Below, in pieces: positions 3,393-7,639 of a stretch of 7,639 bases of DNA. Origin of the DNA: Paramicrosporidium saccamoebae KSL3 (taxonomy: Eukaryota > Fungi > Cryptomycota). The notes under the pieces are model-generated. The model did not search any database, was not told the origin of the DNA, and saw only the letters and a list, made by a program, of their open reading frames with translations. The position numbers and the translations under genes are program-made. The stretch spans positions 1 through 7,639 of the forward strand of contig MTSL01000136.1 in assembly GCA_002794465.1 (NCBI GenBank), written 5' to 3'. Every line of letters begins with the position of its first letter. The first letter of the stretch is position 1.

Positions 3393-3398
3393 ATTTGT

Positions 3399-3415
3399 AA
3401 TAAAAACTCTTTATT
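3399..3415. terminator. Opposed polyadenylation signals for convergent MTQ2 (AATAAA + strand, 3399-3404) and glycogen synthase (AATAAA - strand, 3410-3415)
   Basis: Sequence AATAAA-AACTC-TTTATT starts 6 nt after the MTQ2 stop. Confidence 0.55.
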
Positions 3416-3508
3416 GGAATTCCTGGCTTGTTGTACATTAGTTTTCATGTCATGAGCACTCGCATCAGCATTAACTCTCACGCCATCAGTCCCCGCCCCA
3501 TGACACTG

Positions 3509-5575: not shown

Positions 5576-5713
5576 TTAATTACCGCGGATATGGGCCCAG
5601 CCCTTATAAGATTAATCGCCATTTTCAGAAATGCCCCCCATTTGATAAATTACCATGGATACCCGTTTTGGAAATCGTCATGCATAAATAGAAAACATGA
5701 ACCCATCGCATTC
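5576..5713. promoter_or_regulatory. 138-bp divergent promoter region between glycogen synthase and the REC114-like gene
   Basis: Head-to-head gene starts, with TATA-like TTATAAG (5604-5610) and short palindromes CCGCGG and TGGGCCCA. Positional inference only. Confidence 0.4.
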
Positions 5714-6640
5714 ATGCTTATATCGCTCCCTGTCGAGAGATACTCCAGGTGCTATCCTCGATACGAAGAACAGTACTCAGACGTCGGCGGAGAGCCATTA
5801 TACATGCTCATGCCCTCCATGCAAGCCTCTCAATCGCAAATGTTCCAGACGGTTGCCCACAGCAATTTATGGACTGCAATAGCCGAAAGCGAGAGCGTCA
5901 AAGTCAATTGGGAGATGACCGTGGCCACGACAGATGCTGTCACTCTCCAGGTAACGGCTTCAGTGCCCGGCACAACTCTTATACTGGTATACAAATGTAT
6001 TGTTATCGTCACTTTTAGGAACGAATCAGATTTCCCGAGACATTCAATGCAGGCTTCAAGGTTTCCCCCAAGCAGAGGAGCCTGGGATTTCGTTATCTTA
6101 AAAACCAGGTAGAGAGGTGCATTCTTCTTCAAAGCTTAGCGTCAATATTTGTTCCAAGTAATCTTTTCAGAGGAATTCCAGTGTCGTCTTTGCTACGATT
6201 CAATGTATCGATTCGGGATCCTAAATCCAATATGGACAACGCCATTCCAATTTGACAACGGCATGGAATGGGCTAGCTCGGAACCGAAGCAATTGGAGGC
6301 CCAGGAACATAGGGTCCCGGAAAACGAGCCAACTGTACCGATTGCACCGATTGTTCTGAGTGATACGGATTCTAACGAAACTACTTTATCCAGTCAAGAT
6401 GAAAGCATAGATTATGCGGCTGCACTAACAGGAATAACAGAGCCGGCCTTGCTATCTGCTGACCTGCCAAACGAAAGACAGATTCAATGCATTCAAGAGC
6501 GCTCCCGCCGAGTCATTCTGAGAGTGGATCCATCCAAAGCGGAAAGATTGAGAGATTCAGTGCAGCGGTATAGTTCGCAGAAATCTGATAACCCAAATGA
6601 CTTTTCGTTTTTATTGGCTGCCTCGTACGGAACTCAATAA
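5714..6640 (+). CDS. REC114: Probable REC114/Rec7-like meiotic DSB protein (N-terminal PH-like domain); join(5714..5986,6019..6108,6140..6640), 287 aa
   Basis: The spliced product shows REC114 signature segments in the expected order: LPVERYSRCYP (cf. human WPLQRYARCIP), NLWTAI (PTWKVF), GTTLILERIRF (GQTLLEGFSL), SLGFRY, and YLFQVIFSEEFQCRLCYDSM (RLFRVQF...CCSCVQKL). These are followed by a low-complexity acidic linker and a helical C-terminus. The length is similar to vertebrate REC114. The assignment is by eye; no HMM was run. Confidence 0.72.
5987..6018 (+). other. Intron 1 of REC114-like gene (32 nt)
   Basis: GTATAC...GTCAC-TTTTAG, phase 0; joins TLIL|ERIRF. Confidence 0.7.
6109..6139 (+). 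other. Intron 2 of REC114-like gene (31 nt)
   Basis: CAG|GTAGAG...CTTAG, phase 0; joins GFRYLKNQ|RQYLFQVIF. Branch-point match is poor. Confidence 0.72.
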
Positions 6641-6641
6641 A
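6636..6641 (+). terminator. Candidate poly(A) signal AATAAA overlapping the REC114-like last codon, its stop and the A of the SDR ATG
   Basis: ...ACT CAA TAA ATG GAA... Confidence 0.4.
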
Positions 6642-7513
6642 TGGAACGTTTACGAAACAAGACTGCTCTCATGTAGGATTCGCATACCAAATGCTATTCA
6701 CTCTTCCAGAACAGGAGCCAGCTCGGGGATAGGAGAAGCGTGTGCATTCGAAATGGCCGCTTTAGGCTGCAACTTGGTTTATGACCTCATAATGACTAAC
6801 TCGGTGGTAGATTCTGTTTGCAAGACGTTTGGATAGACTGAGAGTTTTGAAAGAGACACTGGAAGAGTGCTCTTCTTCAAGTGTTCAGATTCATCAAGTA
6901 GATATTAGGGACAAGGAAGCGATACGGGCAGCTCTAAAGGAATGCTCCGACATTGATATACTCGTCAACAACGCCGGTTTGGCGCTGGGAATAGAATCTT
7001 TTGTCAATACTGATGAAGCAGCATTGGAAGTGGTGGTGGACACTAATATCAAAGGACTAATGTATGTAACACGGGAGGTGCTCCCTAAGATGCTCGCCAG
7101 TGAGAGCGTCTGTACTGTTATCAATATCGGTTCTATCGCTGGAAAACAGGCATATCCGAACGGGTCGATCTATTGTGCGACAAAGCATGCCGTGCATGCA
7201 CTAAGCCAGTCGCTACGAATGGAACTAATCAGCACCAAAGTCCGAGTGGCAGAGATAAATCCTGGTACCAATCGCAGTTGCATCTTGATGACTGCTAGGA
7301 CTTGTGGAAACTGACTTTTCAGTGGTACGTTTTGGGGGCGATTCCGACCGTGCCAAATCGGTTTATTCTGGAATGAATCCCTTGACTGGAAAGGATGTTG
7401 CTGAGATGGTCGTGTTTATTGCAAGCCGACCCGATCATGTTCAAATCAGCGAGATTGATTGCTTCCCCACTAATCAGGCTTCTGCTTACCATGTTCACCG
7501 ATCCCAAGTGTGA
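6641..7513 (+). CDS. NADP-dependent short-chain dehydrogenase, YdfG/YMR226C (3-hydroxy-acid / L-allo-threonine dehydrogenase) family; join(6641..6672,6710..6776,6811..7264,7299..7513), 255 aa
   Basis: MERLRNKTALITGASSGIG (Rossmann TGxxxGxG), ILFARR (basic residues typical of NADP preference), ILVNNAGLALG, GSIAG, YCATK catalytic motif, PGLVETDFSVVRF and FPTNQAS, closely like yeast YMR226C. Exon total 768 nt is in frame. Confidence 0.92.
6673..6709 (+). other. Intron 1 of SDR (37 nt)
   Basis: GTAGGA...ATTCAC-TCTTCCAG; joins ALI|TGASSG. Confidence 0.9.
6777..6810 (+). other. Intron 2 of SDR (34 nt)
   Basis: GTTTAT...GACTAAC-TCGGTGGTAG; joins GCNL|ILFARR. Confidence 0.9.
7265..7298 (+). other. 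Intron 3 of SDR (34 nt)
   Basis: GTACCA...ATGAC-TGCTAG; joins EINP-G|LVETDF. Confidence 0.92.
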
Positions 7514-7516
7514 GCG

Positions 7517-7610
7517 CTATGTTTTATGGCTCCCCAATAAAGAGGTGTTGTGATGTAGAAGATTGATTAGCTGGGTATTTGAGGACAGTGAGATTTGTAT
7601 CCATGCTATT
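7517..7610 (-). CDS. Possible terminal exon of a convergent gene entering from beyond the window
   Basis: Minus strand GCTAAT-CCTAG (branch plus acceptor ending at 7611) is followed by two open frames ending at TAA 7526-7524 or TAG 7519-7517. No recognisable homology. Confidence 0.3.
7536..7541 (+). terminator. Poly(A) signal AATAAA for the SDR gene
   Basis: CCAATAAA 22 nt after the SDR stop. Confidence 0.55.
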
Positions 7611-7639
7611 CTAGGATTAGCAGTGAACAAACCCCCCCC

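Follow-up and report, generated by a model that had tools for sequence, protein, structure and literature searches.

The window analyzed here, a 7,639-nt stretch of Paramicrosporidium saccamoebae KSL3 (positions 1 to 7,639 of contig MTSL01000136.1, forward strand), contains two genes that meet without a single spacer nucleotide: the stop codon of a REC114/Rec7-like gene is followed directly by the start codon of a gene for a short-chain dehydrogenase/reductase (SDR). We consider it probable that these are two separate functional genes giving rise to overlapping, independent mRNAs, and that the lack of a spacer is the end-point of intergenic shrinkage in a compacted genome. P. saccamoebae, an intranuclear parasite of amoebae, has been placed as sister to Microsporidia, and its genome comprises 7.28 Mb with 46.9% GC and 3750 protein models (PMC5701793); the GC content of the window is 46.6%. 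The two open reading frames (ORFs) share strand and frame, and the junction reads ACT CAA TAA/ATG GAA CGT, with stop, polyadenylation [poly(A)] signal and start merged in 8 nt (AATAAATG). Rereading of the sequence bore out the coordinates given in the original prediction, together with its description of 9 nt that hold Gln, stop, hexamer and Met. The elements of the junction are as follows.

6638-6640, + strand: TAA terminating the REC114-like gene, homologous in position to the stops of the relatives L001, L003 and L005
6641-6643, + strand: ATG of the SDR gene, directly adjoining the TAA
6636-6641, + strand: AATAAA, covering the end of the Gln codon, the TAA and the first base of the ATG; presumably the poly(A) signal for REC114-like transcripts

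An assembly or sequencing artifact at this site has practically no probability left. Suspicion of one could be nourished by the short contig, the non-axenic sample and the poly-C contig end, but an independent Joint Genome Institute (JGI) metagenome contig with the same gene order (L001) carries the identical junction, ACTCAATAAATGGAACG, and flanks in an assembly that differs by about 13% elsewhere. This finding excludes the assembly error that had been named as a way to overturn the observation. L001 shares about 87% nucleotide identity with the window in the REC114-like gene, its glycogen-synthase protein is 96% identical to that of the window, and it was the only match when relatives were searched with the exon-3 peptide. 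The 37 nt on either side of the junction are 94.7% identical between the two contigs versus 86.9% for the exons (P about 0.025, for a window chosen post hoc), a weak hint of extra constraint on these 75 nt.

Both partners are well-defined spliced genes with very short introns, which we place as follows.

5714-6640, + strand: REC114/Rec7-like gene, 287 amino acids; exons 5714-5986, 6019-6108 and 6140-6640
5987-6018 (32 nt) and 6109-6139 (31 nt), + strand: introns of the REC114-like gene, from homologue alignment
6641-7513, + strand: gene for a classical SDR of the YMR226C (3-hydroxyacid/serine dehydrogenase) type, 255 amino acids; exons 6641-6672, 6710-6776, 6811-7264 and 7299-7513
6673-6709, + strand: first of the three GT..AG introns of the SDR gene (37, 34 and 34 nt), from the spliced protein

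The SDR start is unambiguous. The N-terminus MERLRNKTALITGASSGIG appears only once the 37-nt GT..AG intron at 6673-6709 is removed, and the exon-1 peptide M-x-R-L-x-x-K is kept in five relatives (L001, L003, L005, L008 and L012). The phase-2 intron after exon 1 is likewise kept in four of them, L001, L005, L008 and L012; the sequence of L003 ends inside exon 1. Since the codon before the ATG is an in-frame stop and the next in-frame Met lies past the glycine motif, translation is placed at 6641. The spliced protein matches Pfam adh_short (E=7.4e-50), and its residues 2-252 align with yeast YMR226C (PDB 3RKU, E=3.9e-64; 3ASU, E=7e-47). It carries TGASSGIG, NNAG, GSIAG and YCATK, so that all features expected of a classical SDR of the YMR226C/YdfG type (cofactor motif, NNAG, Ser, YxxxK and similarity over the full length) were found. 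The N-terminus, the conserved first exon and the full-length YMR226C alignment show that this ATG had been called rightly.

The upstream gene required a corrected model. Introns of 68 and 64 nt, as in the GenBank entry, yielded no Pfam match and removed 12 (VTASVPGTTLIL) and 11 (RQYLFQVIFSE) residues that are present in homologues. The corrected model also fits L001, where the introns measure 38 and 29 nt (+6 and -2 nt). Similarity to L001 collapses 5' of 5714, where that contig has a 74-nt insertion, which supports 5714 as the start. Nucleotide comparison with L001 shows purifying selection throughout the REC114-like gene, up to the stop: differences by codon position 1/2/3 amount to 17/16/79 (79 of 112 in third positions), and to 2/3/13 in the last 150 nt before the stop. 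At the C-terminus, three lineages share the block DFSFL.AASYG and, two residues further on, a stop in the equivalent place (YGTQ, YGPE and YGSS, each before its stop codon). This conserved ending contradicts the notion, considered in the original prediction as a refutation, that the upstream ORF really ends earlier.

The assignment of this protein to the REC114 family, at first a guess, is supported by transitive sequence evidence plus predicted fold. The Pfam model PF03525 (Meiotic_rec114, Rec7 N-terminal domain) scores the window protein below its gathering score of 23.8 (15.9 bits, E=0.016), homologue P0005 at 23.6 bits (E=6.4e-5) and homologue P0007 above it (25.8 bits, E=1.3e-5). Membership of the window protein is thus transitive, via phmmer links with E=2e-14 and 2.3e-12. 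The AlphaFold2 model derived from the family alignment predicts a beta-sandwich plus helix and is confident for most of the first 150 or so residues, with 10-residue block means of pLDDT of 79-95 for residues 51-140 and lower ones, 51-71, for residues 21-50. Its two best Foldseek matches in the PDB are the pleckstrin homology (PH) domain of mouse REC114 (6NXF_A/B; E=1.3e-5 and 5.4e-5, TM 0.63 and 0.59 on target), followed by generic PH and phosphotyrosine-binding (PTB) domains with E of at least 2e-3. The predicted N-terminal fold is therefore PH-domain-like and closest to the solved REC114 structure. The family profile searched against PDB sequences returned only noise (E of at least 0.7). 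A REC114 protein would be expected to act in Spo11-dependent double-strand break (DSB) formation and to have a conserved C-terminal helical segment that binds Mei4. In the window protein, helices are predicted at 233-248, 252-266 and 277-282, in addition to the conserved C-terminal block. The protein thus resembles REC114/Rec7 in its N-terminal PH-like beta-sandwich ending in a helix, its disordered middle and its short helical conserved C-terminus. It differs in sharing just 16% identity with the mouse protein, in scoring below the Pfam threshold and in motifs of the clade's own, namely N-terminal ERYSRCYP..EEQYSD and C-terminal DFSFL..ASYG.

An exhaustive HMMER search recovered 19 relatives, most of them exon-sized metagenome ORFs and three of them intron-less full-length proteins, and the family occurs in many uncultured relatives (P0004-P0020; L003-L014). 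Their clade-specific motifs extend to ERYSRCYP..EEQYSD..G.PLY at the N-terminus and Q.QERARRIIL...LR.S.QR...DFSFL..ASYG at the C-terminus, and several members bear VIVL/IVLSDTDS stretches resembling SUMO-interaction motifs. A protein-pattern scan of metagenome contigs confirmed no member, and a DNA-pattern match for the C-terminal motif in such contigs (L011) was rejected as a chance match in a bacterial ATP-synthase locus. L001 carries an in-frame 69-nt insertion (1700-1770, opposite 5842/5843) encoding 23 proline/glutamine-rich, repetitive residues (SQTPISQMPQTPISQAPLLRAPI) in the loop before the first well-predicted PH-domain strand; this loop thus tolerates large length changes. The 74-nt insertion of L001 (about 1490-1565, opposite 5691) lies in the divergent spacer between glycogen synthase and the REC114-like gene and consists of imperfect repeats, CATGCA(T/A)AA(T/C).C(C/T)GCG, which may represent a promoter element in several copies; in the window, CATGCATAAATAG occurs once, 22-34 nt 5' of the REC114-like ATG. 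Spo11 is present in the P. saccamoebae genome, and the meiosis genes listed in the genome paper do not include the REC114/Rec7 family (PMC5701793). The literature searched held no mention of Rec114 together with Microsporidia.

Relatives place the zero spacer at one end of a series. The distances from the REC114-like stop to the SDR ATG are as follows.

Window and L001: 0 nt; in frame; AATAAA overlaps the stop
L004-L007 lineage: 21 nt; in frame; AATAAA inside the spacer
L003: 38 nt; out of frame; AATAAA overlaps the stop
L008: 66 nt; in-frame stop; AATAAA inside the spacer
L012: 294 nt; several in-frame stops; no AATAAA near the stop

The order of the two genes is kept in the more distant relatives despite the varying spacer, which answers the earlier call to compare synteny and gap length. 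They belong to a block that recurs in metagenomic and genomic relatives, consisting of AAA-ATPase (-), methyltransferase (+), glycogen synthase (-), REC114-like (+), SDR (+), Rad60-SLD ubiquitin-like (+), NatA auxiliary subunit (+) and HLH (-) genes (compared with the window in L004, L005, L009, L012 and L013). Neither the pair nor its tight junction is conserved as a unit, given spacers of 0 to 294 nt and the loss of the SDR gene from the three most divergent relatives, L009, L013 (assembly GCA_020047435.1) and L014. The most compact and AT-rich of these are L009 and L014, where the Rad60-SLD gene follows the REC114-like gene after 21 nt, in the place of the SDR gene; in L013, an 81-amino-acid ORF comes next. 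A different partner in L009 and L014 means that abutment does not depend on the SDR. Judged by glycogen-synthase identity (76-79%), L012 and the L004 lineage stand at much the same distance from the window, so spacer length follows each lineage's own compaction rather than phylogenetic distance. The graded spacers of 294, 66, 38, 21 and 0 nt, together with the different partner elsewhere, thus make zero the extreme of a continuum and not a sign of specific coupling. Four of the five distinct lengths (0, 21, 66 and 294) are multiples of three, 38 being the exception; about 5% is expected by chance, and the pattern is probably a coincidence, as two of these spacers have in-frame stops.

The + strand of the window has just five AATAAA hexamers, and each of its three genes has one (3399, 6636 and 7536) at 0-25 nt from its stop, an arrangement with a roughly estimated chance of about 1e-5. 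This placement makes the junction hexamer very likely the poly(A) signal of the REC114-like gene, and AATAAA overlaps or follows the REC114-like stop in L001, L003, L005, L008 and L009 as well. Two further elements of interest are the following.

7536-7541, + strand: AATAAA, 22 nt past the SDR stop codon (it starts 23 bases past), a use of the signal like that at the junction
6613-6619, + strand: ATTGGCT, the reverse complement of a CCAAT box, inside Leu-Leu-Ala codons of the REC114-like gene, 22 nt 5' of the SDR ATG

The only other copy of ATTGGCT in the window, at 2614, lies 28 nt before the methyltransferase ATG, and L003 has a CCAAT within its 38-nt spacer. Noticed post hoc, the element is a lead only, as a candidate core-promoter element. 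A scan for promoters and terminators of bacterial type, which covers bacterial signals only, gave one promoter-like match (0.6 expected by shuffling) and no terminator-like site.

By analogy with Microsporidia, overlapping independent transcripts are most likely. The two genes would be expressed as separately made mRNAs, that of the REC114-like gene using the AAUAAA over its own stop and being cleaved about 10-30 nt further on, inside SDR exon 1. The SDR mRNA would start no more than a few tens of nucleotides before the REC114-like coding sequence ends; its leader would be very short, and its promoter elements would lie embedded in REC114-like codons. Run-on transcripts over both genes would probably occur but would not be the route to the SDR protein. 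Several points weigh against this scheme. Its transcription start and poly(A) sites are positions read from sequence; AATAAA is absent near the stop in L012 and 3' of the - strand AAA gene; the count of ATTGGCT in the window is not statistically enriched; and the MAKER model joins both genes, which could reflect an RNA-seq assembly over both, as fits run-on or bicistronic RNA. Of the second option in the original prediction, overlapping transcripts combined with mutual interference, the overlap is the part best backed by context, namely tiny spacers, an AATAAA near every + strand stop and microsporidian precedent. Mutual transcriptional interference between the REC114-like and SDR genes is speculation, and nothing links a DSB factor functionally to an SDR. 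The same prediction's description of the arrangement as operon-like and unusual in eukaryotes is overstated for a compacted genome with a gap series of 294-66-38-21-0 and another partner in relatives.

The rest of the window conforms to this compact layout.

2586, - strand: ATG (presumed start) of an AAA-ATPase gene
2649, + strand: ATG of an Mtq2/HemK-like methyltransferase gene
5575, - strand: ATG of a glycogen synthase gene
2587-2648: spacer of 62 nt between the divergent AAA-ATPase and methyltransferase ATGs
3393-3508: spacer of 116 nt between the convergent methyltransferase and glycogen synthase stops
5576-5713: spacer of 138 nt between the divergent glycogen synthase and REC114-like ATGs
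6640/6641: spacer of 0 nt between the tandem REC114-like and SDR genes

With these spacers (62, 116, 138 and 0 nt), and with 21-37 nt in L009, the locus has the microsporidian-type trait of intergenic space too short for promoters plus terminators. The convergent spacer at 3393-3508 contains facing AATAAA signals at 3399 (+) and 3415-3410 (-), by which the methyltransferase and glycogen synthase genes should have 3' untranslated regions (UTRs) that overlap in antisense; the CCAATAAAGAG context of its signal reappears 3' of the SDR stop (7534-7544). A perfect CCAAT box (GCCAATCAG, - strand, 2613-2621) sits in the middle of the 62-nt spacer. The methyltransferase gene has two introns of 34-39 nt, placed by eye. 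The contig ends in eight C (7632-7639), resembling an assembly or library end artifact, and the Rad60-SLD gene expected next after the SDR lies beyond it.

Two readings would turn the pair into one protein. The best database match of the upstream ORF is the GenBank model (P0001), a 453-amino-acid "Serine 3-dehydrogenase [Paramicrosporidium saccamoebae]" spanning 5714-7314, and this public annotation amounts to a single spliced gene in which an intron at about 6626-6676 removes the TAA and ATG. The GT and AG dinucleotides are present at the required positions in the window, but the donor GT is not kept in L001 (TCGTACGG to TCATACGG). Moreover, the model translates SDR introns, omits residues 34-56 (ILFARR...SSSS) at the start of exon 3, drops the KTALI strand before the TGxxxGxG motif and terminates early, inside the last SDR intron, by reading through. 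The deposited annotation was produced with MAKER and an Augustus predictor trained on Rhizopus (PMC5701793), which explains why the real introns of 31-37 nt were missed. The entry is chimeric, joining the REC114-like gene to a mis-spliced SDR, and a genuine single gene of this structure is barely credible. Readthrough of the TAA into an in-frame REC114-SDR fusion, another option of the original prediction, is hardly less improbable as the source of a protein with a function of its own. Frames are continuous in the window, in L001 and over the 21-nt spacer of L005; they are out of phase in L003 (38 nt) and interrupted by in-frame stops in the spacers of L008 (66 nt) and L012 (294 nt), which contradicts the proposal. 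The stop here reads UAA-A, and an A after UAA makes for strong rather than leaky termination. The chimeric P0001 was the only REC114-SDR fusion to emerge from 1.8 billion representatives and 5.8 billion clusters; none that is natural was found. The frame is thus not kept open and in phase across relatives, nor is the stop context leaky.

A bicistronic mRNA made from the REC114-like promoter, with the SDR translated by termination-reinitiation at UAAAUG and so coupled to translation of the REC114-like ORF, corresponds to the first option of the original prediction; it is unlikely and gains no positive support. Stop and start are directly adjacent, an arrangement kept in two genomes; the 21-66-nt spacers of relatives leave little room for a promoter; and the fused GenBank model may stem from a transcript assembly spanning both genes. 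Reinitiation after a long ORF, here of 287 codons, is nevertheless inefficient in eukaryotes unless a dedicated upstream element is present, and folding of 6541-6700 detected no unusual RNA structure around the junction (z=+0.72). The 294-nt spacer of L012 at the same gene pair makes independent transcription likely to be ancestral, and in L009 and L014 the REC114-like gene has another gene as its close neighbor. In addition, REC114 is expected to be restricted to meiosis, whereas the SDR is a metabolic enzyme. A stronger proposal sees in AATAAATG not just passive compaction but a selected switch, in which meiotic transcription of the REC114-like gene silences the embedded SDR promoter and vegetative SDR initiation blocks 3' end formation of the REC114-like mRNA, or in which ribosomes reinitiate on the SDR. 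If true, 8 nucleotides would place a DSB factor and a metabolic enzyme under reciprocal or joint control; we regard this as decidedly unlikely.

Our favored reading, two independent genes with overlapping mRNAs, has its closest counterpart in Microsporidia. Overlapping transcription units are described from Encephalitozoon cuniculi, Antonospora locustae and nucleomorphs (Williams et al. 2005 PNAS and Corradi et al. 2008, as summarized in PMC2803860). In E. cuniculi, experimental mapping has found 5' UTRs of <7 nt, use of AAUAAA with transcription overrun and overlapping transcription at >80% of analyzed loci; once the genome was re-annotated, head-to-tail contacts or overlaps of coding sequences were reported as very rare (PMC2803860). 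The locus described here shares the tiny spacers, a poly(A) signal on or close to the stop codon, predicted 3' ends within the following gene and promoters presumed to lie in the upstream gene, and its host lineage is sister to Microsporidia. It differs in that the spacer, known here from sequence, is exactly 0 nt with three signals merged, and P. saccamoebae keeps many spliceosomal introns (31-37 nt). Viral termination-reinitiation sites, such as the UAAUG overlap in influenza B segment 7 and the stop-start sites of caliciviruses that depend on the termination upstream ribosome-binding site (TURBS), also have immediately adjacent stop and start on one strand. However, the viruses need an upstream rRNA-complementary element and a single mRNA, and the upstream ORF here is a long cellular gene. 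Polycistronic transcripts have been reported in fungi and green algae by long-read cDNA. Those loci likewise comprise tandem same-strand genes that may share transcripts, but they normally keep spacers of tens to hundreds of nucleotides, between functionally related or unrelated genes.

To conclude, spacerless genes and transcripts overlapping their neighbors are already known from compacted eukaryotic genomes, and the REC114-like/SDR pair, from the sister lineage of Microsporidia, adds a clean further example, complete with evolutionary intermediates, rather than a new kind of gene organization. It shows how tightly an intron-bearing eukaryotic genome packs two independent genes, while relatives preserve intermediate steps of spacer loss. 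The real introns in both genes are far shorter than the predictor assumed; gene prediction in P. saccamoebae needs introns of 31-37 nt, and other models of this genome may be affected. By-products of the analysis are the corrected gene model and the finding that this clade has a REC114/Rec7-like family; the member in the window makes it more credible that the sister lineage of Microsporidia possesses a canonical Spo11 DSB machinery.

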